Translations under genes and position numbers: made by a program | Origin: Dimorphilus gyrociliatus | Lineage: Eukaryota > Animalia > Annelida | Assembly: GCA_904063045.1 (NCBI GenBank) | Contig: CAJFCJ010000064.1 | Location: 1-47,444, forward strand | Direction of reading: 5' to 3' | Length of the DNA: 47,444 nucleotides | Shown: piece after piece, positions 1 to 45,920 of the stretch | How the letters are laid out: each line of letters opens with the position of its first letter | Position numbering within the stretch: position 1 is the stretch's first letter | Notes under the pieces: generated by a model | Seen by the model: only the letters and a program-made list of their open reading frames with translations | The model's database searches: none | Told to the model about the DNA's origin: nothing

Positions 1-430
1 GAGCCTCTCTCCAGATTCTTTATTAAACTTTGCCTGACATAGCCAAGTTCAGTCAATTCTGTAAAATTTTTCAGAATATTTATCATTGGACATGGAAAAT
101 TAAGTTCATCACATTCCCTTAGGCTAAAATTTCAGCTTTGTTTGATTGTAGACAATTTAAAAGCAGTCTAATGTTCTCTTCTGTAAAAAATGCAATTTTA
201 AAGTCTATAAAAATATTTCATCAATATTTACCTAGAATTTTACATTTGCATAATTTAACTTTGCAACTTGATACATTTCAAGTATTGTAGTGACAAACAT
301 CCAATGAAAAGGCATTACAATTGTTTAGGGTTAAAGACTTTAAAGAAAATGATTCAATAGAATTTCTAAATGTTTTTCTGCCTTAAAGAGAATATCAGAG
401 AGATAAGTGTTTGAGCTTAAAAAACTTTCA
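1..430 (-). pseudogene. Decayed LRR tail of the NACHT gene
   Basis: Other frames overlapping and following the ORF end read KLKHLSL*, LKSLTLNNCN, NVSSCKLN and FSLRECD. These LxxLxLxxC-type motifs are separated by stops and frameshifts. Confidence 0.55.
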
Positions 431-2208
431 AACATATATTGAAAATATTGAACATCAATTGATTTTCTCACCCCTCCTCTTAATATTAAACTCTCCAGAC
501 TCCCATTTAAAGCATCCTTGATTGTATCAAAAAAATCATCAAATGTTATTTTCACAAATGTAAAATTAATCACAGTAATGTTTTTTACAGTATATTCTAC
601 TATCAAATTTAAAAGTGATTTATTCAAATGGATACTTTTTAAGCAGAACTCAAATGAATTTTTAGGATTATATTTTTGAAGTAGTTCAATTACTTGCTTA
701 TCAAGATCTAATTTATCAATTATATTTGAATTTTCTTTCATAATCACAGAGAAAATTTCACCATCCATATCTTGTAGAAAATTGAATACATTCTGCATAA
801 AAATGATATATTTTGATGTCTGTAATGCTTCATTAATATTTTGTCTTTGATTTTCAACATCAGACTTGTACTCTTGAAGAATATAATATGCTGTAAAATA
901 GTCTTGAAATGAAGAATGTATAAATTTCAAAAATTCCTCTCCAATTGTGTTTATTTTAAATGGAGTTAAAATTCCATTAAAATAATTATATCTTTCAACA
1001 ATATTTGTTTTTGTAATTTGTGAATTGTAAAAATGATTTTCAAAAGCTAGTGTTGAACAGAATTTCAAAAATTCCCTACTATCTGATGCTCTTTTAGAGA
1101 TGAGTTCAATAAACTCTTGATATATATCTGTATATCTTACAACTTTCATTTCAGAACTTTTATCATTCCAAATAGAAGCTGTTAGCAAAGCAATTAGAGG
1201 AATTTTGCAAGCTTCCAAAAGGTAGTCTTTATCACTTAAAAAGCTCATAATTTTCTCAGACTTTAAACTCTCTTCTTTGGGTTGTTTTGTTATCCCAATT
1301 TGCTCATGAAAAAATTTTTTGAAAAACATTTTTAGGCTATTTTCATCAAACTGAGATATTTCAAAAATAAAGTCATAAGTATCTTTAATTTCAAAACATT
1401 TTGATTTTCTGGACCAAACTATAACTGGGAAATTGGTAAAACCTTTGCTAGATATGATATCAGTAAAGATTGTTTTGTCTGATTTAAGTTCATCTGCTCC
1501 ATCAAAAAGTAATACAAAGTTTCTTTGTTTGTCAGCTAAGTAATAATCAAATAGTTCCCTTGATATCCATGTTTCATATGTAATATTTTGGGTGAATAAT
1601 TGTTTATTGAAATCTAAGTCATCATTTATCTCATTTAGCCTTCCATGTAAAACTGTATACTCTTGTAGAATAGTATTTTCAATTGCCCATGAATACAAAA
1701 CTTGCAAAAAATGATGAGTTTTTCCTATTCCAGAATCACCTTGTATTAGAATTCTATCATTACCATTTTCAATTATTTTATTAAACTGAATACCATTAGA
1801 TGAACAAGACTCTGACCCTTTTAGCATTATAAAGTTAAATGGGATTGTAATATTCTTCAAATTTACTCTCTTTTTGTTGTTGTTTAAAAATGGAAATTGG
1901 GGAATTGTTTGACATTTTCTTTTCACTTGCTCCTTTATGGCAATATTAAAATCATTCCATGTATTTTGAATATTCTTTAAAAGTTTATCTTTGTTTTTTG
2001 TCCAGCTTTCATGTTTTCTTAATAAATTTATAAAATCTTCAGTCTCCAAAGTAGAAAGATGTTGATCAAAAAGTATTTCTAAATTGTCCAATTGGTATTC
2101 AACATCAATTATTTTTTCTTGTACAAGAAAAGACTGGAAATGAGGATCATTTTTTATATACACAAGTATATCTTTCTTGTGTGTTATAATCTCTGAATTC
2201 ACTCTCAT
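340..2208 (-). CDS. NLR-like NACHT NTPase with a probable N-terminal death-fold (CARD-like) domain; LRR tail truncated
   Basis: 622-aa single ORF. Walker A RILIQGDSGIGKT, Walker B FVLLFDGADEL, HD1-like CKIPLIALL, winged-helix FIHSSFQDYFTAYY. The helical N-terminal ~90 aa look death-fold-like (inference). One LRR-like SLESLIL near the end. Confidence 0.85.
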   Translation of the reverse strand: MRVNSEIITHKKDILVYIKNDPHFQSFLVQEKIIDVEYQLDNLEILFDQHLSTLETEDFINLLRKHESWTKNKDKLLKNIQNTWNDFNIAIKEQVKRKCQTIPQFPFLNNNKKRVNLKNITIPFNFIMLKGSESCSSNGIQFNKIIENGNDRILIQGDSGIGKTHHFLQVLYSWAIENTILQEYTVLHGRLNEINDDLDFNKQLFTQNITYETWISRELFDYYLADKQRNFVLLFDGADELKSDKTIFTDIISSKGFTNFPVIVWSRKSKCFEIKDTYDFIFEISQFDENSLKMFFKKFFHEQIGITKQPKEESLKSEKIMSFLSDKDYLLEACKIPLIALLTASIWNDKSSEMKVVRYTDIYQEFIELISKRASDSREFLKFCSTLAFENHFYNSQITKTNIVERYNYFNGILTPFKINTIGEEFLKFIHSSFQDYFTAYYILQEYKSDVENQRQNINEALQTSKYIIFMQNVFNFLQDMDGEIFSVIMKENSNIIDKLDLDKQVIELLQKYNPKNSFEFCLKSIHLNKSLLNLIVEYTVKNITVINFTFVKITFDDFFDTIKDALNGSLESLILRGGVRKSIDVQYFQYMFESFLSSNTYLSDILFKAEKHLEILLNHFL

Positions 2209-7180: not shown

Positions 7181-7441
7181 GAAGAGAGTACAGCTTTAAA
7201 TACAGACCTAAATGATAACTTTTGCAGAATAATTGCCACATTGACATGGGTAGGAAAATATTTGACAAGTAATTGAATTTGAGATGACAGTGTCAACACA
7301 GATCTGTTCTTCTACAGCCACAAATGATATAGTTTACTGTCTGTAACCCTATGAAACGGTTGATGTATTCTAAAAAGGAAGAATGCCCAATGTAATCATG
7401 TGTGGATCCATATAAGATGTTTAAGCAAGTGATGTTTCATT

Positions 7442-7783
7442 GATAAAAATGAATTTGACTGTGCAATTTGTTTAGACTCTTGGGTTTATAATGACTCCAG
7501 AATGTTGCCTTGTCAAAAGTTCATATAAGGTCATGTAATGTAAATAAAGAACAGAGTAAAGAGATTAGAAAGCTACTGAAAAATTGCTCTAATTTGCAAA
7601 ACAATTGACCTATCAGAAAACAGAGAGATGAAAACTGGAATATTGAACATTTACAAAGCATTACAAAAGTCATCAAGTACTCGAATTACACTTTATTTAA
7701 AGTTATATGATTTCAATGAAGAACAACCTGAAGAGATAAGAAATCTGATAAAACATTGTTCTAATATAAAAATAAGAATTTAA
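7442..7783 (+). pseudogene. Half-RING fused to a QQSSN-family LRR fragment
   Basis: DKNEFDCAICLDSWVYNDSRMLPCQ, then out of frame SCNVNKEQSKEIRKLLKNCSN / TIDLSENREMKTGILNIYKALQKSSS...NEEQPEEIRNLIKHCSNIK. Not in the ORF track. Confidence 0.8.
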
Positions 7784-8277: not shown

Positions 8278-9436
8278 TTATTCCTTGTCATAATCAAATT
8301 CTTCTCCAAGAGAATTTTGTATATCAAATCTTTTATTACTAATTATGATTATTCCACTAGTCGTTTGCTTTATGTGCCATATATTTTCTATCTCCATTTG
8401 GAAATATTCATTAAGCATATATTCAACACTTGTACATTTTTCTTCATTTAAAGAACAGATACCAAAATAAAGATTCTTCAAAGTGTTTGACGACGTTCAA
8501 AGTCCTTTAAGAATATTGATTATTCCATTATCCCAATCCATATTGCCCAATAGATTTACTGTCTCAATTTTAAAGCAATGTTTAAAAAGATCTTCAATGT
8601 TATGACTGTGTTCTTCCTTCATAAAACAAGAATTAAAATTAATATTCTTTAATGTGTTTGATGACATTTGAAGTCCTTCACAAATATGATATAGACACTT
8701 GTTATTAAAAAAACTATAAGATAGATTTATCGTTTCTATTTGATAAAACTTTTTCAATAAATTTCCAATCTCTTCACTATGATTTCTATGTAAACAATTA
8801 TGGCTTAAATTCAAATTCTTTAAAGTACTTGATGACATTTGAAGTCCCCTCATAATACTGAATAGTCCTTGATCCATCATTTGATTTCCACATAAATTTA
8901 TTGATTCTATTTTGGAACAATGCCACAATAGATTTTCAATTTCTACACATTGTTTTACATTTAAATGGCACTTTTTGAGATTAAGACTTTTCAAAGTATT
9001 TGATGACATTTGTAATCCTCTGCAAATAGCATGTAGTCCATAACCCATCCATTTATTATTTGATAGATCTATTGTTTCTATTCCAGAACAATGTTTTAAT
9101 AAATCACCAATCTCTTCACATTGTGCCATTATTAAATTACAATTTCTAAAATTAACATTCTTTAAAGTATTTGATGATATTTTAAGAATTTCACAAATAT
9201 TTGTAAATTCTTTTCTTGGACTTTTTTCATGAAGTCTATATTTCCAAATCAAATAATCCATAAACATTTCTACCACATAGTGAACATAAGACTTGATTGT
9301 AGCCACTTCTTAACTCAATGTCTACACATGCATAACACATTTTATGTTTACAAGAGAGTATATCTGAACTTTTCTCTTTGTAAAATTCCTCACAAATTCC
9401 ACATTGGAATTCAGTTTCACCAAAAAAGTTCATCAT
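8278..9436 (-). pseudogene. RING-LRR gene with a frameshift and a nonsense codon
   Basis: C3HC4 RING (CGIC...CKH.MCYAC...CSLC) from ATG 9436. The LRR array lies in another frame from about 9215. A TGA at 8497-8499 interrupts GL*TSSNTLK, and the same frame continues to 8278. Confidence 0.85.
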
Positions 9437-16133: not shown

Positions 16134-16767
16134 GCAAGGTCTGTAGAGAGAGATCTAGCTTTAGTGTCTAACTGCATGACAGCTTCAGATTATATCAGAA
16201 TTTTGAGCAGTCATGTTGTCCCAAATTATAAGAGAGGGGACATTTTCCAGCAGGATGGGGTTAGCTGTCATAAAGCAGCCGGAACAAAATCATACCTCAT
16301 GAGAAAGCAAGTGGACACACTGGATCCATGGCCAGCAAACAGCCCAGACCTGAACATTTTTGAGTGAATATGGGGCATATGCAAAAAATGATTAATGGCA
16401 GTAAGCCAAGAAACAAGGATGAGCTGTGGGGATGTTCAGAGAGGAATTTTTTAAAATTTTAGAATTGAAAATTCAATTCTTATACAAGACAATAGAAAGA
16501 AGGCTTAGGGCAGTTGTAGAAGCTAAGGGTATGCACACAAAATACTAAAACATTAACACATATAATATCCTGTTAAATAACAGTAAAAATAAGAACAAAA
16601 AAATTACTTTTAATATTCTTTTAGATTAATTTTTGTGAATGTAACAAGTACTTATGCTCCCATTGAAAATAGGCCTACCACATTAAAATATCAAAAATTT
16701 AGAGATTTGAAATTAAAAATGTATATTTTCTCTCTATAATGATAAGAAGAATATCATTAAATATAAT
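16134..16767 (+). mobile_element. Tc1-like element, 3' part (DDE C-terminus, truncated TIR)
   Basis: FQQDGVSCH...WPANSPDLNIFE*IWG. The right TIR stops about 110 bp short, where MULE-2 begins. Confidence 0.9.
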
Positions 16768-16775
16768 AGAATTAT

Positions 16776-19539
16776 GGAGAAAACGTCCACTGGAGAAAAC
16801 GTCCACTGGAGAAAACGTCCACTGATTGGAGAAAACGTCCACTGGTTGGAGAAAACGTCCACTGGAGAAAACGTCCACTATGTGAAGAATATATTAAAAA
16901 ATACTTTTTCAAATTTAAATAATAATTTTTTATTATTGATTTTGAGATATATCCAATACATTCCCATAATGCAATCACTTTTGGTAGCCATTTTGAAATC
17001 CAGACAGGAAACAGTTCTGGAATCTTCTATGTTTTTCATGGAAAGTGAATATTGTGCATATTTCATCTACAATTTTTCAGAATTTTTTGCAGTTTGAAAT
17101 ATATTTCACTATTGAAAACCATCAGACAAAACACAAACTTTAGAATTGATATCAGTAAGTTATAGAATATTGTGTTGAAATGATTTATTTATAAATTAGC
17201 TTTATTTTTATAGCAGCCATTTTGTTTATCATTATTGTTAATTGTTTAATTTTTAAATTTATACAGTTGGTTATTGATAGAGATTCCAAATTGAACATGG
17301 CACCAATTTGTTACATTTGTGAAGAGAGAATATATGGAAGACAAAATCAAGAGAAATGTCAGCTTTGCTGTCATTTATTTAAAATACATAAAAAATGTTT
17401 GGATTATAAAGGTTTGTTTAAGTTTTTTGTCACTATCCTTCCTTACAAATATGTTTTTATATTTTTTCACAGATCAATCATTTTATTGTAACATTTGCTG
17501 TGACATATCAATGAAGAAATGCATTGTTGCACTTCAAAGGCTACCTTCTAGTGCATCTGCTAATGAAGAAATAAGACAAACACCAAATTTTGATACAGCA
17601 AATAATAGAAATGAGCAAACTATTGTTTGTGAAAATCATTGTGGAAATTCAAGTGGAAATGATACAAATGGCAGTATTATGGAATCACACAATGTTTTAG
17701 TTGAAGATCTTCCAGCTCAGCAAAATAATATGATGGAAGTTTCATTTATAGTTTCTCCAAAATCAGATTGTGAGAAAGAAAGTTATTCATTTAAAATCTT
17801 AAAGGGAATGAGCCAGAAAGGAAAAGATTTGCTACTTTTCAACAATTTCTGCTACAATATTAAAGAAAAAAGAAACAAGACAACATTCTGGATATGCAGT
17901 GTTAGGAACAAAAGAAACAAATGTTCAGCAACAGTTAGTCAGCATGGGAACAGTTTTTATCCTGGAAAGTTATCCCATTCTCATGAAAGAGTACCTGATT
18001 TGGAACAAAAAATAATGATTAGGAATGAACTAAAAAATGCTTGTAATAAAGATATCAGTAGTTCAGGAAAACGTTTAGCTGAAGATGTTCTGGTGAAACA
18101 TTGTAGTTCTGGTGAAGTTATTCCATCTCTAGATAATTGTACAAGACTGGCAAACTGGACAAGAAAGAAGTTTAGACCAGCTGAACCTCAAAGTATTCAC
18201 TTCAACTTGGCTAAAACTTTTATTCCTGATGATTTTTTACAAATGGATATACAAATGGAGAATGATAGAATACTAATATTTTCAACTACAAAGCAAATTG
18301 AATTATTATCTAAAGGCAAAATATGGTTTATGGATGGCACATTTAAATGTGTGAAAGACCCTTTTTATCAACTTTTTTCTATTCATGGATTTATAAAAAA
18401 AAATGGAGAAATAAAACAAATTCCAATGGCTTTTGCTTTTATGGGATCTAAGAGAAAGACAGCCTACAAGAAATTATTTAAGGTACAATAATTTTGCATT
18501 TTAAATTGAATAATCTAATTTGTTAAATTAACAGGCAATACAAGATTTAACAAATGGGCATAGCCCCAAAAAAGTTGTTGTAGACTTTGAAAAAGCTATT
18601 TGGAAAGCACTATCATTCACTTATCCTGAAGCAAACATTAAAGGGTGTGTTTTTCACTGGACACAGGCAATATACAGAAAGATTCAAGTAATACTTTAAT
18701 TTAGTATTTGAGGTCTAGATAGAACTGACATATTTATTTCCAGGAATTAGGATTATGTAAGATGTACAAGGAGAAAAAAGCTGAATATAGAATCATGAAG
18801 AAATTAATGGCATTACCATTCCTGCCCTCTGATCTGATAGAACCAACATTTAAGACTATTAAAGAAATAAGTCCTATTGAAATGAAGTCTCTATTGGAGT
18901 ACATTGAGACACAATGGATAAATGGATTTTATAAACCAGAGGTATGGTCTGTTTATGGTGAGGCTATAAGGACAAATAATGATCTTGAAGGATGGCATCA
19001 CAGGCTTAACAAGAATCTTTGCTCTAACACTGCATTCTATTTGCTTTTAGATGAACTGAAAAGAGAAGCTGATCTGATAAAGCTATATAAAAAATTACTG
19101 AGTGAAAAGAAAATTTGTAGACAGCAAAGAAAAGCATATCAGAATATTCAGAGCAAAATATTCAGCTTATGGGAACAATTTGAAATTGCCTCAATTACCT
19201 CCCTGGACTTACTTGATAAAGCTTCTGACATTTATTCACCAGTTTAAAATACCTTTATTCTTTAATGTTGTTACACTGTTGTCAATCATTCTTGTTATAA
19301 TGCTTCTTTTTACTTAATCAATATATTAATATTTAAATATTTGTAATTCTTATTATTCATTTTTTCCTGTCAAATTGCTCTAAAAACTCCATCTATCAAA
19401 TATCTTATATCTTACTTTGAAGTTTTATAGTGGACGTTTTCTCCAGTGGACGTTTTCTCCAAGCAGTGGACGTTTTCTCCAAACAGTGGACGTTTTCTCC
19501 AGTGGACGTTTTCTCCAGTGGACGTTTTCTCCTGTACCC
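16776..19539 (+). mobile_element. MULE-2 element with modular (foldback-type) TIRs
   Basis: Six identical GGAGAAAACGTCCACT units at each end (16776-16879 and 19429-19532) in mirror arrangement. The right terminus reads GGGTACA on the reverse strand; the left end lacks it. Confidence 0.95.
17297..19247 (+). CDS. Intact PHD-FLYWCH-MULE DDE transposase, 4 exons, 593 aa
   Basis: Exons 17297-17411, 17473-18482, 18535-18687 and 18744-19247. Introns are GT-AG, 61/52/56 nt. The 1782 nt splice in frame. Motifs: C4HC3 PHD, FLYWCH, WFMDGTF, VVDFE, GCVFHW and RTNNDLEGWH. Confidence 0.93.
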
Positions 19540-19973: not shown

Positions 19974-20924
19974 CTAGTATGTTTCTGGTTGGCTAGGAGA
20001 TATAGAAGCCATATTACTTTTACATAATTTCATTAATGACATTTTGATTGAAGTATGACCTAAAATAGTTATTATAGGATTAATTGTTGCTTGAAGAAAT
20101 ACAATAAAATCAGTTGCTTTAATTAATATAATAGATTCTAAAACTGGATATTCCAATATTAAAAATGCTCCAATTGAAAAGAATATCCATAGAATGATGA
20201 TTAAACATAACTGGATTAATGTTATTTTTGAATATTTAGAAATATTTTTTATCTTTCTGGTTTGTTTTTCAATATCTTTTGCGTGTTTTTCAGCAATTTT
20301 TAAAATTTTAACATGTAAAATTAAAGCCAAAATTATAATTGGTAAAAGGAATAGAAGATAAATAAAGAAATATGCTCTATGATATCCAGCATAACCTTGA
20401 CAAAGTCTATATTCATTTAAACCCAATGAAGAGAGATAAATTGGAAATAGACATGTAATTAATGAGAAGAGAATTATTGAAATAATAATGATAGTTGACC
20501 TCTTAATTGTTAAAATATCTTCATAGTGAAAAGGGAATTTTATCATAATATATCTATAGATAAATGTAAATAATAGGAAATATTGGGAAATATTGTAAAT
20601 TATTATATGAGTATATAATATTAATATACAAAATGGCGGTAAAAAGTCATTGATGTTTCTTGAATCATTAATAAAAACTTTTGAAAAAATCCAAGTGATT
20701 GTTAAAAAATCACATATCGTTACTGCTGGTGTAAAAATCATCATTTTATCTCTGACTTCTGTGAATTTTCCATAAATAAATAACACCAGACAATTGAAAA
20801 ATACACCAGAAAATAGGAATAAAAAGTAAAATATTCTTAGAATAGTAAGATCTAAAGGATTATAAGATGAGGAATCTTTTTCTGTTGTTGATAAAGAAGA
20901 TATATTATCAGAATTCATTTTCAT
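19974..20924 (-). CDS. Class A 7-TM GPCR (divergent, chemoreceptor-like), single exon
   Basis: 316 aa with seven hydrophobic segments: GVFFN in TM1, ICDFL in TM2, FIYRYIMIKFPFHY at the DRY position and INPIIT at the NPxxY position. Confidence 0.9.
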   Translation of the reverse strand: MKMNSDNISSLSTTEKDSSSYNPLDLTILRIFYFLFLFSGVFFNCLVLFIYGKFTEVRDKMMIFTPAVTICDFLTITWIFSKVFINDSRNINDFLPPFCILILYTHIIIYNISQYFLLFTFIYRYIMIKFPFHYEDILTIKRSTIIIISIILFSLITCLFPIYLSSLGLNEYRLCQGYAGYHRAYFFIYLLFLLPIIILALILHVKILKIAEKHAKDIEKQTRKIKNISKYSKITLIQLCLIIILWIFFSIGAFLILEYPVLESIILIKATDFIVFLQATINPIITILGHTSIKMSLMKLCKSNMASISPSQPETY

Positions 20925-22355: not shown

Positions 22356-22622
22356 CAAAAGTCATCAAACATTTTAAAAAGTATTGATTTATCTGCATGT
22401 CATTTAAATGAAAAACAGAGTGAAAAATTTGGAGATTTACTTAAAAGATGCTCTAAAATAGAAACAATAAATTTACACTTAAACAAAGGAATGGGGTATG
22501 AATTTTTAGATATTTGCGAAGGGCTTCAGCAATCATTCAACACTCTAAAGAATCTATATTTAGCTGCATGTAATTTAAATGAAGTACAAAGAAAATTTTT
22601 GGGAAATTTGCTTGAAAATTGA
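22356..22622 (+). pseudogene. 88-codon QQSSN-family LRR fragment inside MULE-3
   Basis: QKSSNILKSIDLSACHLNEKQSEKFGDLLKRCSKIETINLHLNKGMGYEFLDICEGLQQSFNTLKNLYLAACNLNEVQRKFLGNLLEN*, with no internal stop and no 5' start codon. Confidence 0.93.
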
Positions 22623-22709
22623 ACTTTTCCAAAATTGCTAAGATTTCTTTTTCAATTTTGCTTTTCCTATTAGCTTAATTTTTTGATATCAAGGTATTGT
22701 CAATTATTT

Positions 22710-24832
22710 TCAATAATATAATTCTGAGCAAAGCTGCAGAAGCTGGTTTGCATTAATTTCACCTTTTCTAAAATTTTCCCAAATTAAGAAAAGATCTTTT
22801 TGAATTTCACTATAAGTCTTCCTTTGAAGTCTAATTGTCTTTCTCTCATTAAAAGGTTTTTGTACAGATTTATCATGTCTGCTTCCCTCTTTAACTCATC
22901 AATCACTAAATAAAAAGAAACATTTTCTCCAACAATTTTATTGAGCCTTTGATGATAACCTTCCAGATCATTATTTGTCCTTATGCTTTGATCAAAAACA
23001 GACCAAGTCTCTGGAGACCAAAATGTATTTTTTATCCAAGTATTAGACACATAGTCCAACAAATCAGACAGTTTATTTTCTTTTGTCAGTTGATTTTGAA
23101 TTTTAGTGAATTGATTTTCAATCATGCCATGAGGCAAATATGGCAAAGACATAATCATTCTCATGGATTCCCAAGCTCCCTCTTTTTTTCTAAATTCCCT
23201 GCTATAACCGAGTTCCTTAAACAAAACAAATATTAATTGGATTGTTAAAAATTTTAGAAATCAATAAACCTGAATTTTTCTAAATATTGCCTGAGACCAG
23301 TGAAATGAACATCCAGTCAAGACAGCATCAGGCCATATATTTTGTAAAGTTTTCCAAACAGCCTTTTCATAGTCTAAGACTATTTTCTTAGGAGCACAAT
23401 TTTCAGCTAAATCCTTCACAGCCTTAAAAATTTAACATGATTGCTTATTAGTAAGTATATTTATGAAATGTAATTCTTACCTGGAAAAGTAGTTTATATG
23501 CTCTCTTTTTTTTAGAAGACAGAAAAGAAAAAAGCAATGGAACTTGCTTAAGCTGTCCATTTTTTTTCAAAAATACATGAATGGAGTACATTTGAATGAA
23601 AGGTTCATTGGCAATCTTAAAAGTACCATCAAGGTACCAAATTTTCCCCTTTGACAATAGCTCCAATTGATGATTTGTTGCAAAGATAATGATCCTCTCA
23701 TTATTCATATTTATATCCTTTGTTAAAAATTCAGGAGGAATGAATGTCATATTCAGCTCAAAGTTTTTATCATTGGGTACAATAGGCCTGTTCTTCCTTC
23801 TATTCCAATTTCCACTTCTTTACAATTAATTATATTTGGTATGTTTGAAGTACTAGAATACTTGACAAGAACATTTTCAGCAATTCTTTTACCTGAAGAA
23901 TTTATATCACTAGAACAATTGTCTTTGATTTCATTTCTTATACGAATACTGGTTTCTAAATATTTTATTGGTGAATGACAATGAATGTTTGTCCCAATTG
24001 CAAAATTGCTTCCTTTTTGATTGATGCTTGCTTTACATTTTCTTTTTTTGCTTCTGACAGAACAAGTCCATACAGTAGTTGTTTTTGTTTTTAATTTAAT
24101 AGTATATGAAAAACCTTGGTGAAAAAGTAAGTCTTTGCCTTTTTGACTTCCATGTGGCAGAATTTTAAAATGAAAATCATCAGAAGAATTTTCTTTGGCA
24201 GATGTTTCACTTTCAAAAGATTCTTCCTCAATTTTTTCAGATTCTATATATGCATTTTGAATTGTTTCAAAATTTTCAACTTCAATTTCATTATCATATT
24301 CAATATCACTTCCATTAATGATATTTCCTTTGTCAACCTTTGTGTTTATACTTTCATCATTATTGTCATTGCTACTCCATGATATAGATAACCTCAATTC
24401 TTCTGTGAACTCTTCAGTACTCTTTTCTTGTCCTTGATTATTGTCTCCTTTCTCATCAATTTTTAATTTTTCCTCAGTCATGCTGTTATTCTCCTCAATA
24501 TTTTTTTCTGGATATTCAACAATTGCTTCTTCCTTCTCATTAAGTTTTGCAGTAGAATTACTTTTTATTGGTACACTTTCCCTGCATTTTTTTGGTTCAT
24601 CAATTCTCTTTAACATCACAAAACAGGTTTTTTTAGTTATTTTATAACAAATAAAACAGAGTGGTGATGCTGTTGATGAATCTGGAAGAAAAAAAAACAG
24701 TAAATGTTTTTCAAATAGAAGATAGTACAAACCATGCAGACATTTTATATGACAAATATGCAGGCACAATGAGCATTGGCCTTTTATTTGCCTACCAACA
24801 AATTGATCATTGCAAATAGAACACTTATCCAT
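22710..24832 (-). pseudogene. MULE-3 PHD-FLYWCH-DDE transposase with two 1-nt frameshifts
   Basis: Exon 1 is 24733-24832, followed by a 51-nt phase-1 intron. Motifs WYLDGTF, VLDYE, GCSFHW and RTNNDLEGYH. Each frameshift (near 23820 and near 22850) is repaired by one extra base next to an A run. Confidence 0.9.
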
Positions 24833-30082: not shown

Positions 30083-31410
30083 TTAGGTACGAATGAAAAG
30101 TTTCAGTCACTGTGTGTTTTTGTTAGAAATATTTGATGAATGTGGTTAATTTTTGTGTATGTTAAAGCCTAAAGTATATGCTACAAATATTGATAATTTA
30201 ATTTTTCAATAGTCCCCTCCGTTTTCTATACAAGCCTGCCATTTGCTAGGAAGTAGAGTGATGCCATTCCGGTAAAACGAGGTTGGCTTTCTCCTCAGAA
30301 AATCTTTGACATCTGTCTCCAATTCCTCCAAATTGTCATAATGAGATCCTCTGATATGGTCCTTCAATCTCCCAAAAAGATAATAGTCAGAGGGAGCCAA
30401 ATCAGGACTGTAGGCTGGGTGAGGGCATAATGACCACCCTTGATCTCTTATGAAATCTGTTGTATAGAGACTTGTATGCGGTCTTGCATTATCATGCTGT
30501 AGTATCATTTGTTTTCCAGGTCTAATTCTATGCAACCTCTTCCTTAGTCTCTTTAGGGTCTCAACATATTGTATTGAGTTGACTATTTCTCCATACTCCA
30601 TGAATTCAATGTGGACTAAACCAGAATAGTCCCAAAAAACTGAGCACATCAGTTTTTCTGCTGACTTGGCCATTCTAAGCTTCTTGTCAGGTGGAGATGA
30701 TGTGTGTTTATAAGTCAAAGAAGACCATTTAGATTGTGGATCATAGAGGTGTACCCAGGTTTCATCTCCAGTCACAATTTTTTCTAAAAAGTCTCTTCCT
30801 TCTGCCGTGTATCTTTCAAGTAGCTCCATACAATGACTCACCCTCACCTGCTTCTGGTCCAGATTGAGAGCATAAGGAATCCATTTTGCACAGATCTTTC
30901 TGTATCCTAGCTCCTTTATAATTTTCCTTACAGTCTGTTGACAAAATTTCTATTTGTTGGGCAATTGCTCTCTGAGAAATGGTCCAATCTTCTCTGATAA
31001 GCCTGTCAATTTCTTCTCTATTCTGACCTGTTACAGCTGTGCTTGGATGACCAGATCTTGCCAAATCTTTAAAATTTTTTCTTCCTTTTTTTCTGTCAGA
31101 TACCCACCTCCTTATTGAACTTTCACTCAGAGTTTCATCCCCACAAAAGCTTTTTAACCGCTTATAAATTTGTCTTGCAGACACCTTCTCATGCACTAAA
31201 AATGCTATGATTGGTTGTTGATCAGAACGTGTGCACATGACTTGCAGTTGCTCATACCAAAATAAATTTGTAATGCCTCAACAGAATCGAATGAAAGTTT
31301 GCACAGTGAAAGTTTACTAAGTTCCTAAGATTATTGGAAAGTATCAATGATATTAGTTAAGCCGTTTTAAAATTACAGCACAGTGACTGAAACTTTTCAT
31401 TCGTACCTAA
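30083..31410 (-). mobile_element. Full-length mariner (DD34D) element
   Basis: Perfect 32-bp TIR TTAGGTACGAATGAAAAGTTTCAGTCACTGTG with TA on both sides; 1328 bp. Confidence 0.97.
30206..31238 (-). pseudogene. Mariner transposase with one internal frameshift
   Basis: RSGHP, AKWIPYAL (WVPHxL equivalent), TGDETW, HDNARPH and YSPDLAPSDY, with 34 residues between the last two Asp. Frameshift near 30945. Confidence 0.95.
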
Positions 31411-32240: not shown

Positions 32241-33452
32241 TTAGGTTAAATGTATAAAACATTTCCTTTCAGAAAATATTTGTAGTAAATTTCTCAATTT
32301 AATACGTTGTTCTCCATTCAAATCACCACTAGACAATGTAAAACACTTTAATGTATGTGATTTGTGAAGTCCTTCACAAATATTAAAAATCCCACTTCCC
32401 ATCTGATTGTTACAACGTATGTGTACAGTTTTGATTTTAGAACAATTATTAAGCAAATTTCCCAATTTTTCACCACATTCTTCATTCAAATTACATTGAG
32501 AAAAACCAAGATATTTTAAGACATTTGATGATTGTTGAAGTCCCTCACAAATATCAAAAAATCCATTTCCTATCGCATGATTTTGACTTAAACTTAATGT
32601 TTCAATTTTAGAACAATTTTTAAGAAAATTTCCCAATTTTTTACAGCATTCTTCATTCAAATTACATTGATAAAAACTAAGATATTTTAAGACATTAGAA
32701 GATTGTTGAAGTCCCTCACAAATAGCAAAAAATCCATTTCCCATCTCGCTACTTTGTCCTATATCTACTTTTTCAATTTTAGAACAATTTTGAAGCAAAT
32801 TACCAAACTGTGTACTTTGTTCTTCATTCAGATAACAACGAGGCAAGTAAATATCCTTTAATATATTAGAAGATTGTTTAAGCCCTTCACAAATAACAAA
32901 AAACCCATTTCCCATCATTCTATTTCCATCTAAATGTATTGTTTCTATTTTAGAACAATTCTGAAGAGCATTTCCTAACTCAGTGCTTTGCTCTTCATTT
33001 AAAAAACATTCTGTCAAATCAAGATTCTTCAGTACATTTGATGACTGTTGAAGCCCTTTAAAAATTTCGAAAAGTCCTTTTCCCATCTCTACACTATAAC
33101 TTAGATTTAATAGTTCTATTTTAGAACAATTTTTCAATAAATTTCCCAATTTATTACTTTGTTCATCATTCAACTGACAATAAGACAATTCAAGACTTTT
33201 TAATGTGTTGGATGATTGTTGAAGTCCATCACAAATAGCAAAAAATCCATTTTTCATCATTCTATTTCCATGTAAATTTATTGTTTCTATTTTAGAACAA
33301 TTCTGAAGAAAATTTCCAAGACTGGTACTTTGCTCTTCATTTAAACAACATCCTGACAACTCAATAGTCTTTAATATGTTTGCTGATTGGTGAAGTCCTT
33401 TACAAATAGTGAAAAAACCATTTTTTATGTTTTTGTTGATAGCTGTATTCAT
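32241..33452 (-). CDS. LRR-only protein (403 aa), seven tandem 56-aa double repeats of ribonuclease-inhibitor/NLR type
   Basis: Repeating SSNxLKxLxLxxCxLNEEQxxxLGNxLxNCSKIExxxLxxNxxMGNGFFxICEGLQQ, open throughout. It begins in mid-repeat and an in-frame stop lies 6 codons upstream of the ATG. Confidence 0.85.
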   Translation of the reverse strand: MNTAINKNIKNGFFTICKGLHQSANILKTIELSGCCLNEEQSTSLGNFLQNCSKIETINLHGNRMMKNGFFAICDGLQQSSNTLKSLELSYCQLNDEQSNKLGNLLKNCSKIELLNLSYSVEMGKGLFEIFKGLQQSSNVLKNLDLTECFLNEEQSTELGNALQNCSKIETIHLDGNRMMGNGFFVICEGLKQSSNILKDIYLPRCYLNEEQSTQFGNLLQNCSKIEKVDIGQSSEMGNGFFAICEGLQQSSNVLKYLSFYQCNLNEECCKKLGNFLKNCSKIETLSLSQNHAIGNGFFDICEGLQQSSNVLKYLGFSQCNLNEECGEKLGNLLNNCSKIKTVHIRCNNQMGSGIFNICEGLHKSHTLKCFTLSSGDLNGEQRIKLRNLLQIFSERKCFIHLT

Positions 33453-34259: not shown

Positions 34260-34470
34260 TTGAAATTCTAGACATTTTATTAATACTAAAAAGAGCAATG
34301 ATATCAACAGGCGGAAAAGGTAAGGCCATCAGCTTCCTCCTGTCTCTCCAGTCCTCCATATACTTTCCAGAGTAGCCAAGACACTTTAGGGAACATTTAT
34401 TGTAAAGAAAAACTTCCAAGATTAAATTTTGAATGAATATTTTATCTGAAGTTTTCTATAAGTTACCTAT
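34260..34470 (-). pseudogene. MULE-1-family transposase C-terminal remnant
   Basis: KCLGYSGKYMEDWRDRRKLMALPFPP is near-identical in DNA to 13540-13700. Confidence 0.85.
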
Positions 34471-34677: not shown

Positions 34678-36123
34678 CTATCTTATTATATCTATTTGAT
34701 AATAGTCTTTTTTCAGATTTTCAATCATTTTCATCTCTTTATCATTAAATTTTGAATGTGTTACATCAAGTTTCATCTTTATAATACTTGAAGATTTTTG
34801 TAGTCCATCACAAATGTAAAATACTCCATTTCCAATATATCTATTCTTTGCTAAACATATTAATTTTATTTTGGAACAATTTTGTATTAAACTTCCCAAT
34901 TTTTTACATTGTTCCTCATTTAAATTGCAATCATATAAATAAAATTTCTCCAAAGTATTTGAAGACTTTTGCAGACCATTACAAATGTGAATTATTCCAT
35001 TCCCCATACCTTGGTTTTCTCCTAAAGAAATCTCTTCTATTTTGAAACAATTTTCTAACAAATTCCCCAACATTTTACAGTGTTCCTCATTTAAATTACA
35101 GGCCTGTAAAAATACATTCTTTAAAGTTTTTGAAGATTGTTGAAGCCCATAAAAAACATTCAATATTCCATTTCCCATGTTTCCGTTATTTGATAAAGAT
35201 ATTTCTTCTATTTTTGAACAATTTTGTAGCATATTTCCCAGCTGTATACTTGTTTCTTCATTTAAATTACTGTTGACTAAGTTTACAACCCTTTGCTCCT
35301 TTGATCTTAATAGATTTTGTAAATTCTGCCTTTTGTTTTCAGGTTTATTTTGTGGATTATCTCTGTCAGTTTTAAAGTAGGTCTTCAGGTTTGAAAATAA
35401 TTTCACTTGATTATCATTTAATTTGTTTATTGTTTCATTACTAATTGTTTGCATATTGTTGTTCAATTGATAGTCAATTTGAAGACTATCAACAATTTCT
35501 ATATTTGGTTTTAATGCTTTTATCCAAAACTTTTCTAAATTTTTTGTTTGCCTTTCAAATGTTTTGAAAAAGAGAATTTTAATAGCATTCATTTCACAGA
35601 ATTGATGTCTTATCTTAGCAAAATGATTTTTCAAATTTTCCATAGCTTTTCTTTCAAATTCATCAATTTTATTCAAAATTTCATCTGTAGCTTTGGCCTC
35701 TTCCATTAATATATTTTTTAAATTATCTTTTGACTTTTCAAATTTTTTCATTGAGAAAGTTGTACAACTTTCATGATTTTCATCCAAACATGAAGGACAT
35801 AAGTTTTCAATATCATGTGTCTGACAATACATCAATGATTCCTCACCATGTTTTTTGCATATAATCTTCCTTTTTATTTCACTTTCAACTGAATGTTCTA
35901 GGCGATTTCTCTGCAGTTTATTAAACTTACCATATGGTATATGGACAACTTTTCTGCATACTGGACAAGTGGTCCCTTCATATTTAATTTGTAATTGCTG
36001 TAAACATACTAAACAAAATGTATGTTGACAAGGTAATATTCTGGGATCATTTCCTATCCAAGATGCTAAACAAATTGCACATATAAATTCATCATGGCTG
36101 ATAAAATATCCAGTAGCAGCCAT
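34678..36123 (-). CDS. RING-B-box-coiled-coil-LRR protein (TRIM-like E3 ligase with LRR C-terminus), single exon
   Basis: C3HC4 RING CAIC..PCQHTFCLVC..CPVC, B-box CKKH..YCQTH..LCPSC..HESC, a coiled coil, then about three 56-aa QQSSN double repeats. Open for 481 aa. Confidence 0.92.
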   Translation of the reverse strand: MAATGYFISHDEFICAICLASWIGNDPRILPCQHTFCLVCLQQLQIKYEGTTCPVCRKVVHIPYGKFNKLQRNRLEHSVESEIKRKIICKKHGEESLMYCQTHDIENLCPSCLDENHESCTTFSMKKFEKSKDNLKNILMEEAKATDEILNKIDEFERKAMENLKNHFAKIRHQFCEMNAIKILFFKTFERQTKNLEKFWIKALKPNIEIVDSLQIDYQLNNNMQTISNETINKLNDNQVKLFSNLKTYFKTDRDNPQNKPENKRQNLQNLLRSKEQRVVNLVNSNLNEETSIQLGNMLQNCSKIEEISLSNNGNMGNGILNVFYGLQQSSKTLKNVFLQACNLNEEHCKMLGNLLENCFKIEEISLGENQGMGNGIIHICNGLQKSSNTLEKFYLYDCNLNEEQCKKLGSLIQNCSKIKLICLAKNRYIGNGVFYICDGLQKSSSIIKMKLDVTHSKFNDKEMKMIENLKKDYYQIDIIR

Positions 36124-36261
36124 CTTGATATTGTATATGGATTTTCGTATTTTTACTTTTGCTTTTAAATATTTTTAAAGTTTGCCTTTTCTCTTCAGGA
36201 TTTCTAAAAGAATCAAAAGGAATGAAATTTTATAGTCCGAAACAAGGAGAATTTTAATTCG

Positions 36262-36425
36262 TAAACACATACCACTTGCAGCTCTATTTCTATAAAAGAT
36301 ACGTAGTATTGTATAGTTCTGATTGCACTGATATAGATAAGAACTATTGACCTAGTTTTGCTGAGCAAGGTGCACAATAAGTCGTGGCAACATACTCTAT
36401 TAAATTATAGACAAATATTGTTATT
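36262..36425 (+). repeat. R2 repeat copy upstream of the TRIM-LRR gene
   Basis: GTAGTATTG...GACCTAGTTTTG...CTATTAAATTATA...ATATTGTTATTTGCA matches 4230-4375. Confidence 0.65.
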
Positions 36426-37265: not shown

Positions 37266-38151
37266 CAGTACCAGTGGTAAGTCACTGTTATACCTCAAAA
37301 AAATTATATTTTCTTGATTTTTTTCTCTTTCCATACTTAAGGAATGAAAATGAAGGATATTATTATATTTAATGATATTCTTATCATTCTAGAGAGAAAA
37401 TATACATTTTTAATTTCAAATCTCTAAATTTTTGATATTTTAATGTGGTAGGCCTATTTTCAATGGGAGCATAAGTACTTGTTACAATCACAAAAATTAA
37501 TCTAAAAGAATATTAAAAGTAATTTTTTTGTTCTTATTTTTACTGTTATTTAACAGGATATTATATGTGTTAATGTTTTAGTATTTTGTGTGCATACCCT
37601 TAGCTTCTACAACTGCCCTAAGCCTTCTTTCTATTGTCTTGTATAAGAATTGAATTTTCAATTCTAAAATTTTTAAAAATTCCTCTCTGAACATCCCCAC
37701 AGCTCATCCTTGTTTCTTGGCTTACTGCCATTAATCATTTTTTTACAAAAGCCCCATATTCACTCAATAATGTTCAGGTCTGGGCTGTTTACTGTCCATG
37801 GATCCAGTGTGTCCACTTGCTTTCTCATGAGGTATGCTTTTGTTCTGGCTGCTGTATGACAGCTAACCCCATCCTGCTGGAAAATGTCCCCTCTCTTATA
37901 ATTTGGGACAACATGACTGCTCAAAATTTTGATATAATCTGAAGCTGTCATGCAGTTAGACACTAAAGCTAGATCTCTCTCTACAGAGCTTTTTCTTACT
38001 TATTATCTGCCTCTTGGATAAGGCAGGTTTTTTGGCTGCAATCCTCCCATTTAAATTATTTTTCCTTAGTATTTGCTTCACTGTTGTTGGAGACAGAGAT
38101 AGAGATATGTCAGAGTTATATAATACCTGATGGGCTGTCCACTTGGGGTTT
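37266..38151 (-). mobile_element. Second copy of the Tc1 3' part, with a complete TIR and the MULE-1 target site
   Basis: Inverse of 16140-16767, plus a full TIR to TA (37264-37265). On the minus strand it also reads NPKWTAHQVLYNSDISLSLSPTTVKQILRKNNLNGRIAAKKPALSKRQ, continuing the Tc1 frame broken at 12920. Confidence 0.9.
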
Positions 38152-39615: not shown

Positions 39616-39624
39616 TATAAAAAA

Positions 39625-39980
39625 ATTTTCCAGATTTTGGCTTTGTTCTTCATTCAAATTACATGAACTTAAGCCAAGTACTTTCAGTGTATTGGAAGAT
39701 TTTTGTAGTGCTTCGGAAATATTAAAGTTTCCATCACCAATTCCAATATTTTCATTCAGTCCTAAGATTTCTATTGACAACCTATCAAATGTTGAAGTCG
39801 ATTTTTTGGTAGTTGATCAAACTGGTCAAGAGGTATTTTAACCATTTTTCTGCAAACAGGACAGGTTATTTGATTATTATCAACTGGTAATTCTTGTACA
39901 CATTTGAAACAAAAGGTATGTTGACAAGGAAATATTCTAAGATCATTTCCTACCCAAGAATCTAAACAATGCTACAATAA
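39625..39980 (-). pseudogene. RING fused out of frame to an LRR fragment (B-box and coiled coil absent)
   Basis: LDSWVGNDLRIFPCQHTFCFKCVQELPVDNNQITCPVCRKMVKIPLDQFDQLPKNRLQH, then IEILGLNENIGIGDGNFNISEALQKSSNTLKVLGLSSCNLNEEQ. A paralog of 34678-36123. Confidence 0.88.
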
Positions 39981-40398: not shown

Positions 40399-41010
40399 TT
40401 AGTGGTTGTTCTCAGAGTTGAAAAATAAATTCTTCAATGTTTCGGATGTTTGTTCATGTCCCTCACATATATCAAGAAATCCATTTTTCACATTTATATT
40501 GTATGATAAATATATTCTTTCTATTTTAGAACATTTTTTCAGATGATTTCCTAACTCTGTGCATTGTTCTTTATTCAAATTGCAGTTATTAACATCAATT
40601 AACTTTAGTGTTTGTGATGATTGTTCAAATCCATCACATAGATCAAAAAATCCATTTCCCTTACATTTATTGTATGTTAAATCCATTTGTTCTATTTTTG
40701 AACATTCTCTAAGAAGATATGCTAACTTTGTCCACTGTTCTTCATCTAATTTGCAGTTTTTAACATCAACAACCTTCAAAGTTTAGGATGGTTGTTCAAG
40801 TCCTTCGCAAATATCAAAAAATCCATCAAACATTTAAAAATTCGATTTTAAATCTATTGTTTTTATTTTAGAACATTTTTTTAAAAGACTTCCAAGTTTT
40901 ATGCAATGTTCTGCTTTCATATCACACCGCTCCAAATAAATAAATGTGTTTCTAATGATTGTTCAAGTCCTTCACCAATATCAAAAATTGCATTTCTCAC
41001 ATGTTCATTA
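40399..41010 (-). pseudogene. Degenerate QQSSN-family LRR array
   Basis: ORF 40399-40779 (LKVVDVKNCKLDEEQ...CSKIEQMDLTYNKCKGNGFFDLCDGFEQSS) plus upstream repeats with stops and frameshifts, ending at a MULE-3-like terminus at 41012. Confidence 0.88.
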
Positions 41011-42318: not shown

Positions 42319-43905
42319 CATCTTTGGTTTGTAAACAGCAATTACATTTACACACCATTGCTGATGTCACTTTTTTATAGGTAGTATAAGTGCATTTCAA
42401 TTTTTGGCACTATTTACCAGTACAATTTCTAAAAACTATGACACGGTTGTCTATCTATCAGAAATTTTAGGATCACCAATATGCAGGTTTGTTGCAAATT
42501 CAGCAAAAATTTGCTTCATTTTATTGATTTAATATTTATTTTAGCTGCAAAACAACAAAACCAGATGGAACTGAACTTTATAGATCATCTGTAAATCTAA
42601 ATCTAAGTGACGAGTATAGAATCCCATATGATATCTTCAAAAATATAACTGAATCCAAGATAATTACTCATAGTTTTACATGCACTGAAGGAATGGACTC
42701 TGTTTCTTTTGACTTAAAATCTCTATTACTTAGTATGGAATTCTATACTTTTTCCAAAAATTTAACACAATACAAATTTATTTAAATTTTTTAACTAGAT
42801 TATCACAAAAAAATTGACCTTTCCATCAAGGCCGAAATCTCAAGTATGGAATCATCATCAAGAAAAGTTGACATGATTAATTTACGTTCACAATTGAATT
42901 GCAAGTAAGCATTATTTTTAACATTTTGTAAATGAACAAAATATTTTCCATGAATAATCTCAGAGAAAAGAATGCATAGAGTTAATGTGAATCTTTTGTT
43001 TTTTTAGTTATACCCTCCCTAATCCTGATAAAGCAAGTAAAGATAAATTGGAAAAAATTTTCTCTATGTATTCTGACGATACTGTGGTAGTAACTAAACT
43101 TGGTTCAGCAAAGTCCGCATTGATGAAATTAACTTGTGCTACAGTTGACTCTTTTGTATTCAGCATTGATATTCCAATTTATTTTACACCTAATAGTGAT
43201 CCATGGTCTTCTGCATCTGGGGATCCACATTTTCAACAAATTGTTGTGGATTATCCAGCTCTGACAACAAAGTCTATATGTTATGATGTCACTGGTTCAC
43301 CTGAAGAATATTTATACATTGCTGGTTTTACTTTAAGTGGAATGCAAGTTTATGGACAGCTTAATGATGACTACTACATGCATAGGATTATTATAAAATT
43401 TGATTCTGGTAGAATAACTGCTTTGACTGATTATCTCATTCTTGATAATGGACAAATAATAAACTGGACAGATGATATGCAAAAGATAACTTTTAAATCA
43501 AAACGATTTGAATATTACATCACCAGAAATCTTATCTTTATAAACTCTTTTGAAAATCCAGGAAAAATAATTCAAATACAGAAATCTATACACTCTTTAT
43601 CAGAAATTCACTTGGATGTAAGTTTTAAACTATCACCTAAAGATTATAAAAAAATGGATGGACTTATTGGTGATATTGGAAAAAAGAAATATATATTTCA
43701 CTCAGAAGTTCAATCTGATAGGAATGTTGGATCAAAGTCAATTTCAATTGAAATTGATAACAAGTTAATAAAGGGAGAAAAAGTGGAAAGAAACAAAGAA
43801 GAATGCTGGCTGATTGATGTTGATGATATTTTAAAACCATTTGAAATATCAAAATATCTATACAAAACTATGAATGTTTTTGAAAATGTCCTTCCAAACC
43901 AATAG
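42319..43905 (+). CDS. Spliced protein with a GDPH motif and an inter-alpha-trypsin-inhibitor heavy-chain C-terminal-like domain; 5' end uncertain
   Basis: At least five GT-AG exons join in frame (42319-42380, 42421-42486, from 42545, from about 42799, from about 43008 to 43905). SASGDPHFQQ...ICYDVTGSPEEYLYI resembles ITIH C-terminal GDPHF...CF...G. No VIT or vWA domain seen. Confidence 0.75.
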
Positions 43906-45642: not shown

Positions 45643-45659
45643 AATAAAATCAAGAAATA

Positions 45660-45920
45660 AAAGAGTAAATATACATCTTAAAGGCATTTGTTTTAACAGG
45701 AATACAAGTAAAGACTTAGGTAAGTTGCTGATATGTTGTTCCACAATTGAAACAATAAATCTATCATGGAATTTAAATATGAGAAATGAATTTTTAAATA
45801 TTTGTGAAGGACTTCAAAGTTGAACAAACACTTTGAAAAGTCTTCATTTAACTGGTTGTAATTTTAATCAAGAACAAAGCAGAGAGACTAAAAGTTTGTT
45901 GAAACATTGTTTTAGAAAAA
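45660..45920 (+). pseudogene. QQSSN-family LRR fragment
   Basis: LGKLLICCSTIETINLSWNLNMRNEFLNICEGLQS*TNTLKSLHLTGCNFNQEQSRETKSLLKHC. Not in the ORF track. Confidence 0.88.

Follow-up and report, generated by a model that had tools for sequence, protein, structure and literature searches.

An intact intronless TRIM-like gene with an NLR-type leucine-rich repeat tail in the annelid Dimorphilus gyrociliatus

The window analysed here is a stretch of 47,444 nucleotides, the first 47 kb of contig C64 (CAJFCJ010000064.1, 217,657 bases) in the genome of the annelid Dimorphilus gyrociliatus, whose assembly comprises 77.9 Mb in 349 contigs. Its minus strand carries a gene, hereafter the target, that joins the RING, B-box and coiled-coil (RBCC) head of TRIM proteins to a C-terminal leucine-rich repeat (LRR) domain of the type found in ribonuclease inhibitors (RI) and NLR proteins. 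The complete single-exon coding sequence lies at 34678..36123 (-), with an ATG start and 481 codons plus a stop, inside a stop-free open frame that spans 498 aa. GC content across the window ranges from 26 to 34%. Because about 8% of random codons would be stops at roughly 28% GC, a frame of 481 codons is not expected by chance, and arithmetic from composition places the probability of such an open frame near 1e-18.

The RING finger occupies residues 15-57 (35953..36081 (-)), with the zinc ligands C15, C18, C32, H34, C37, C40, C53 and C56. It scores above the Pfam cut-offs for both zf-RING_2 (31.7 bits against 27.3) and zf-C3HC4 (27.3 bits against 21). A phmmer search of the PDB returned the RINGs of TRIM2, TRIM21, TRIM56 and TRIM3 as the closest matches, human TRIM2 being the best (E 6e-9, ~34% identity). 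Structural comparison with Foldseek likewise aligned the predicted target RING with that of TRIM2 (TM score 0.83, root-mean-square deviation (rmsd) 2.1, 34% identity). RING E3 ligases hold E2~ubiquitin through an Ile after the first Cys, the Pro of CPxC and an Arg after the last Cys. These E2-contact positions are kept in the target as I17, P54 and R57, and the family consensus CxIC...CPxCR retains all three residues.

A type 2-like B-box follows at residues 85-124 (35752..35871 (-)), with the ligands C89, H92, C100, H103, C109, C112, H117 and C120, and is supported by ligand conservation, profile comparison and structural modelling. The single-sequence Pfam match to zf-B_box covers residues 85-118 and reaches 15.4-16.8 bits, under the cut-off of 24.1; across the family, 9 of 36 members match this model at E<=0.01. 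All 16 zinc ligands (8 in the RING and 8 in the B-box) are present in the target and are invariant or at least 90% conserved over the 36 members. A profile built from an alignment of the first 280 residues of these members matched the RING-B-box-coiled-coil structure of TRIM3 (8amr) at E 7.7e-19, unbroken from profile position 8 to 190. The next matches were TRIM2, TRIM21 RING-B-box, TRIM56, TRIM72 and KAP1/TRIM28, and the profile runs through the B-boxes of TRIM2, TRIM21 and TRIM3 at E 1e-14 to 1e-19.

AlphaFold2 models residues 125-187 (35563..35751 (-)) as one long helix of 63 residues, the coiled-coil segment, with a predicted local distance difference test (pLDDT) of 85-95; this helix aligns to the coiled coils of TRIM3, KAP1 and TRIM72. 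The linker at residues 188-274 (35302..35562 (-)) is helical and partly of low confidence (pLDDT 41-80), with short helices at 193-200, 229-233, 237-254 and 262-272, and is the fastest-evolving part of the protein. The RING and B-box reach pLDDT ~85-93 (B-box 85-92), and the mean is 82.5 for the whole protein and 79.6 for a head-only model. Foldseek with the head model gave top matches that are all TRIM (the KAP1 tripartite motif, the TRIM21 RING-B-box and the TRIM2 RING), with TRIM72 and the TRIM5alpha B-box-coiled coil lower in the list.

Residues 275-481 (34681..35301 (-)) form the RI/NLR-type LRR domain, defined by PDB matches, internal repeats and the model. It comprises 7 beta strands, arranged as three 57-aa double units (277-447) and a C-terminal cap (448-481). 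Each unit is an RI-type pair of 28+29 residues, encoded by three tandem DNA copies of 171 nt (34776..35288 (-)) that share 70-73% identity. In phmmer searches of the PDB, residues ~275-470 matched ribonuclease inhibitor at E 8e-31, and the LRRs of NLRP1, NLRP3, NLRP5 and NLRP14 followed at E 1e-12 to 1e-10 (NLRP1 1e-12), these NLR matches being restricted to residues ~265-473. Foldseek aligned the whole model with the NLRP1 LRR at a TM score of 0.79-0.80 and an rmsd of 3.0; other matches were ribonuclease inhibitors, NLRX1, NLRP3 and NLRC4. The strand-helix solenoid at 275-480 is modelled with pLDDT above 90. Because no Pfam LRR model matched at E <= 1, either on the 481-aa protein or on the LRR part alone, the assignment rests on the PDB sequence and fold matches. 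The C-terminus runs through an A-type strand and a helix into a short hydrophobic end, and by eye the same form recurs in the paralogous proteins P0001-P0006. This canonical family cap argues that the C-terminus is not truncated, and the 481-aa product reads as a naturally short member with 7 strands, intact at its C-terminal end.

Direct reading of the 481-aa sequence revealed no signal peptide or transmembrane segment, and Pfam and PDB searches returned no match to a NACHT, other NTPase or death-fold domain in this open reading frame (ORF). Because signal peptide, transmembrane segment and NACHT domain are all lacking, the product should be cytosolic and ubiquitination would be its sole recognisable output. 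An earlier sequence-only reading of this DNA had proposed an intact single-exon frame of 481 aa, a canonical RBCC N-terminus and an RI/NLR-class LRR tail. The frame indeed runs from ATG to stop without interruption; the head is corroborated by the Pfam RING, the family profile against the PDB, the conserved zinc ligands and the predicted fold, and the tail by phmmer and Foldseek. Its description of about three double repeats of RI/NLR type also stands, except for their length of 56 aa, which is 57 because the tandem DNA copies measure 171 nt.

Members of the same family are numerous in the D. gyrociliatus genome. At least 36 further intact single-ORF RBCC-LRR genes, 429-1256 aa in length, were recovered from 52 excised loci; a query with the target head (274 aa) finds at least 140 genome matches, and the LRR type yields 1,568 first-look candidates genome-wide. 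The number of near-full double units per gene ranges from 1 to 9 or more. Eight paralogues occur in the protein collection, identical to the assembly ORFs and labelled unnamed or "RING-type domain-containing" (CAD5118051.1, CAD5126625.1, CAD5126609.1 and CAD5126338.1 among them), and their gene models are uninterrupted ORFs like the target. NACHT proteins of the worm carry this LRR type as well, P0009 (CAD5126542.1) being one of them, and NACHT-LRR and LRR-only genes that carry it share clusters with RBCC-LRR genes. When the origins of head and tail were compared, the closest head relative lay on C45 (51%) and the closest LRR relative was an LRR-only ORF on C132 (58%); the candidates differ little, and this comparison is confounded by the repeats.

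More distant RBCC genes of the genome are without LRR, and their C-terminal halves show at most weak matches to NHL/SGL (beta-propeller) domains. Among them is a tandem cluster of ~25 TRIM-like genes on contig C5 (2,520,000-2,600,000, or 2.52-2.60 Mb), each ~500 aa long with a RING, a B-box-like region and a helix. The RBCC-LRR head may descend from an ancestor similar to the genes of this cluster. According to the D. gyrociliatus genome paper, the species has few expanded families, and most of these are immune-related genes duplicated locally (PMC7854359).

A HMMER search against 1.84 billion cluster representatives returned 2,504 matches, and the RBCC and LRR combination was present in ~37 of the best 150. 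Those whose source was looked up were all D. gyrociliatus records or Logan assemblies of sequencing runs; a search with the whole ORF found six proteins, four of them from D. gyrociliatus. A profile search of a 5.8-billion-cluster collection found full-length relatives in no sources beyond D. gyrociliatus and the Logan read sets. The Logan runs that were traced are SRR23372216/28/29/31 and ERR14224704. Their contigs differ from D. gyrociliatus, a neighbouring Cupin_5 gene showing 70% identity in DNA and 63% in protein. Their GC content of 25-28% makes them just as AT-rich, and family members of 1,160 aa stand on them in tandem arrays. On one 20-kb contig from SRR23372229 (L053), four RBCC-LRR genes of ~1,160 aa follow each other on one strand. 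In a 475-aa protein from ERR14224704 (P0126, locus L064), the RING and LRRs are kept and the B-box zinc ligands are lost. The ESM Atlas contains metagenome-derived protein clusters that combine a B-box with LRR_4/LRR_8 (score 0.87), which belong to a different LRR class and whose nearby matches are ciliate; treated as a lead only, they indicate that a B-box and LRR combination may have arisen elsewhere with another LRR class.

A maximum-likelihood tree, computed in quick search mode from the first 200 residues of 60 LRR-bearing and 15 LRR-less genes, placed all 60 LRR-bearing genes on one side of a single branch that separates them from the 15 others (Shimodaira-Hasegawa-like approximate likelihood ratio test (SH-aLRT) 80). 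Apart from one Logan row nested among them, the genes of D. gyrociliatus form one group, and most Logan genes form a group of their own. The target falls in a fully supported 8-gene clade, sister to L002, L006 and L003-5. Because one branch separates all LRR-bearing genes, this tree fits, with moderate support, a single old fusion that preceded the species split and was followed by expansions in each lineage independently. The sequence-only reading had proposed a lineage-specific multigene family, which agrees with the paralogue count and with the restriction of full-length relatives to D. gyrociliatus and the read-set assemblies.

The target lineage is under purifying selection. Ratios of non-synonymous to synonymous divergence (dN/dS) by the Nei-Gojobori method (NG86) between the target and its five nearest paralogues are 0.38-0.51 overall, lowest in the RING and B-box (0.28-0.44) and highest in the linker (0.46-0.80); with pairwise dS of 0.7-1.7 the comparisons approach saturation, and at 28% GC NG86 is a crude method. 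A three-taxon decomposition assigned to the target's own branch a dN/dS of 0.24 for the RING and B-box, 0.79 for the coiled coil and linker, 0.34 for the LRR and 0.44 for all regions, with a dS of ~0.68 since the split from the nearest paralogue. Near-saturated dS and a skewed base composition make these branch values rough estimates as well.

Variation within the LRR domain is concentrated on its exposed surface. Entropy over 208 near-full family units peaks at unit positions 3, 5, 7, 8 and 31, 35, 36, 38, 39, which are the x of LxxLxLxxC/N in the strand and ascending loop and are solvent-exposed; some helix-surface positions are variable too. In the recent paralogues L003, L004 and L005, the RBCC parts share ~99% identity (dN 0.007). 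Their concave-face LRR codons show dN of 0.17-0.30 with dS of 0-0.03, and their other LRR codons dN of 0.02-0.04 with dS of 0.05-0.10. Between L003 and L004, non-synonymous and synonymous changes number 23:0 on the concave face and 29:10 at the remaining LRR codons (Fisher p 0.0096), and the 23 changes observed on the concave face compare with ~8 expected if neutral (Poisson p 2e-5), the concave-face positions having been picked from LRR structure after the entropy profile was seen. Two other recent paralogue pairs have zero changes at concave-face codons. The variability that the sequence-only reading ascribed to the LRR is therefore visible in the entropy at exposed strand and loop positions and in the non-synonymous excess of one recent paralogue group.

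Around the target, the window displays the birth and death of RBCC-LRR copies. Decayed RBCC and/or LRR pieces lie at 7436-7774 (+), 8287-9427 (-), 39619-39968 (-), 40414-40941 (-) and 45647-45916 (+). In two decayed pieces a RING fragment directly abuts the LRR, so that the B-box and coiled coil have been deleted internally, and stop codons interrupt the piece at 39768-39974. An LRR-only ORF of 403 aa with 7 double units (32241-33452 (-)) begins mid-repeat and ends in a normal family cap. The possibility that it is a cut-off remainder of the target was rejected, as the target ends in its own canonical cap; it appears instead to be a separate 5'-truncated copy, 1.2 kb downstream of the target. 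Similar LRR-only ORFs are present on C132 and C190. Another LRR coding piece of ~285 nt (22356-22640 (+)), with up to 52% identity to the target LRR, adjoins a FLYWCH/MULE-type transposase ORF at 23753-24832.

Transposase ORFs of the MULE/FLYWCH and mariner types are interspersed among the family copies of the window, including a mariner-like ORF read by eye at 30206-30847 (-). Transposon debris lies on both sides of the target, at 37361-37991 and, between the target and the LRR-only ORF 32241-33452, as a MULE transposase fragment at 34293-34460. The 634-bp segment upstream of the target (37361-37991) is 97% identical, in inverted orientation, to 16136-16768, which lies beside a MULE-like ORF at 17319-19247, and is probably a recent transposon end. 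The idea that the target is the cargo of a mobile element was also rejected, as no terminal inverted or direct repeats bracket it and its flanks hold only transposon debris. Nearer to the gene, a TATAAA motif at 36229..36234 (-), 111 nt 5' of the ATG, is no more than a candidate core-promoter element, given how AT-rich this genome is. A stretch of ~135 nt 5' of the ATG (-116 to -237; window 36239-36360) is 72% identical to the equivalent upstream stretch of the paralogue L017 (2245-2377 on C169), and may represent a shared promoter or 5' untranslated region.

At the very start of the contig, an ORF of 622 aa (340-2208 (-)) contains a NACHT domain (Pfam 4.6e-11, residues 152-302); its N-terminal region of ~150 residues reads like a death-fold domain, and no LRR follows in frame. 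The window also contains an intronless rhodopsin-type G-protein-coupled receptor ORF (19974-20924 (-); 7tm_1, 2.8e-14) and a 285-aa ORF with no Pfam match (43048-43905 (+)).

Taken together, the evidence favours, with a probability of roughly 0.6, a complete and selectively maintained gene that encodes a cytosolic TRIM-type RING E3 ligase with an RI/NLR-type LRR as its recognition end. Expression of the target, its E3 activity and dimerisation, its binding of a ligand and its role in immunity are inferences. The concave face of the LRR would bind a ligand, the likeliest candidates being a microbial or viral molecule and a modified host protein, and the coiled coil would dimerise the protein. 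A multivalent target could then cluster the ligase and bring its RINGs together. Clustered RINGs would recruit E2~ubiquitin and, in the manner of TRIM5alpha/TRIM21 and LRSAM1, attach ubiquitin to the bound target, to the ligase itself or to a signalling partner. Three features underlie the immune part of this proposal: an LRR face that diversifies, repeats of the NLR type, and birth-and-death turnover in clusters. The NACHT ORF and the many family remnants in the window, the presence of this LRR type on NACHT proteins of the worm and the genome paper's statement on expanded families (PMC7854359) add a setting of immune type.

Several observations weigh against this interpretation. The exact 481-aa product was not found in the protein collection or the assemblies index, a result that says little by itself; with eight paralogues deposited, however, the target may be unannotated or weakly expressed. 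The selection estimates carry the saturation caveat given above. The selection signal on the LRR face belongs to one paralogue group and not to the target, and in L003, L004 and L005 it could stem from haplotigs (C112 of C91) or from gene-conversion mosaics and unit shuffling. With 7 LRRs, the array ranks among the family's shortest, and solved TRIM coiled coils are generally longer than the helix at 125-187.

A more far-reaching interpretation, which we advance tentatively and at less than even odds, extends the proposal to the whole family. RBCC-LRR genes would be germline-diversified intracellular restriction or sensor ligases, whose hypervariable LRR faces bind pathogen structures directly and whose output is RING clustering and ubiquitination. 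They would represent NLR-independent LRR sensing and a twelfth TRIM class, with a single origin that predates the divergence of D. gyrociliatus from one or more other AT-rich species, in the reverse of the fish NLR-B30.2 fusion.

Other explanations of the same data assign the LRR or the locus a different role. The protein could be a working E3 whose LRR, instead of sensing foreign molecules, docks on host proteins such as the co-expanded NACHT-LRR or LRR-only products; the gene would then control how these are turned over or how they signal, much as TRIM27 acts on NOD2. Regulation of NLRs by TRIMs has precedent (PMC3400628), and the LRR type of the target is common to NACHT-LRR and LRR-only genes of the same clusters. 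A conserved partner, however, would not predict a non-synonymous excess on the concave face or repeat numbers that vary from 1 to 9 or more units; co-evolution with equally variable partners could mimic this excess, and host docking is thus regarded as unlikely while deserving some weight. We consider it improbable that the target is instead a silent product of birth and death with little or no function, which has so far escaped a stop codon. Three observations speak for this view: decayed copies abound in the window, the gene has transposon debris on its flanks, and its product is absent from the public protein set. Yet over a branch dS of ~0.68 the dN/dS stayed at 0.24 in the RING and B-box and at 0.34 in the LRR, and a drifting copy would not have kept 16 of 16 zinc ligands and 481 AT-rich codons without a stop over that distance. 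The C-terminus also ends in the normal family cap and is not truncated.

The least probable of these explanations, and in our assessment a very doubtful one, denies the LRR a recognition role altogether. The domain would act as an intramolecular lid, as an oligomerisation surface (as in the LRRs of resting NLRs) or as a ribonuclease-inhibitor-like binder. NLR LRRs are generally known to exert autoinhibition, and ribonuclease inhibitors are the closest sequence matches of the tail. Nevertheless, the known targets of RI, enzymes of the RNase A type, are vertebrate-only, and a structural lid would be expected to be conserved at exposed strand positions, where this family is most variable.

Comparison with described systems clarifies what is shared and what differs. 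Eleven C-terminal classes of TRIMs have been described (PRY-SPRY, COS/FN3, PHD-BROMO, filamin/NHL, MATH, ARF, a transmembrane segment or none), and none is known to include LRRs. The target has the RING, one B-box and a predicted coiled coil in the same order as TRIMs and with all zinc ligands. Its closest sequence relatives are TRIM2 and TRIM3 (class VII, NHL), whereas TRIM5alpha and TRIM21 (class IV, PRY-SPRY) serve as functional models. It differs in its RI/NLR-type LRR C-terminus and in being intronless, and does not fit classes C-I to C-XI, as residues 275-481 are an RI-type LRR and no other Pfam domain was found there. The sequence-only reading had also held that the standard TRIM classes contain no LRR; the target tail falls outside them, and a full-text literature search returned no description of a TRIM with LRRs. 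At the level of the family, RBCC-LRR genes are multi-copy and clustered with a diversifying recognition end, as are primate TRIM5 and the fish finTRIMs (PMC2657112).

The LRR of the target resembles those of NLRs and RI in its alternating 28/29-residue repeats and in its predicted horseshoe with convex-side helices. The target has no NACHT domain, and its output would be ubiquitination and not nucleotide-driven oligomerisation. LRSAM1, an E3 with the order LRR, coiled coil, SAM and RING, marks cytosolic bacteria for autophagy (reviewed in PMC8567218; oyster study PMC11863841). As a single polypeptide that holds an LRR recognition module and a RING E3, it is the closest precedent for the proposed logic. 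LRSAM1 differs by description, with an N-terminal LRR, a C-terminal RING, SAM domains and no B-box, whereas the target has the reverse order, a B-box and no SAM match; LRSAM1 was also not among the PDB matches of the target. It is, moreover, a single-copy conserved gene.

F-box/LRR (FBXL) receptors and the bacterial LRR-NEL effectors (IpaH/SspH) also use an LRR to aim a ubiquitin ligase. On general knowledge, these are built from unrelated modules, namely an F-box in SCF complexes and the NEL cysteine ligase. In teleosts, the NLR-B30.2 (NLR-C) genes and finTRIMs illustrate the exchange of recognition modules between TRIMs and NLRs in a lineage-specific immune expansion (PMC4852459, PMC2657112). 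The fish NLR gained the B30.2 of a TRIM, whereas in the worm a TRIM carries the NLR-type LRR. Wiring an LRR to a RING is accordingly not new in itself, as LRSAM1 demonstrates, and fish provide a case of TRIM/NLR exchange that ran the other way (PMC4852459). The RBCC-LRR family is present in databases and was found described in no paper. Neither the text of the genome paper nor the supplementary files searched (PMC7854359) name it, and in those files TRIM, NACHT or leucine-rich families are not mentioned.

With three double repeats, the target is a member of the shortest type, which makes it convenient for expression and testing. At 481 aa in a single exon, and in a species with a 78-Mb genome that is kept in laboratory culture, it would be a small system for asking if a RING ligase can be directed by an LRR with no nucleotide-binding switch in between. 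TRIMs and NLRs are the two large intracellular innate-immune families of animals, and SPRY and LRR modules are usually treated as specific to one or the other. A family that places an NLR-type LRR on a TRIM head would mean that natural proteins can exchange these modules, and the TRIM classification would gain a class with LRRs.

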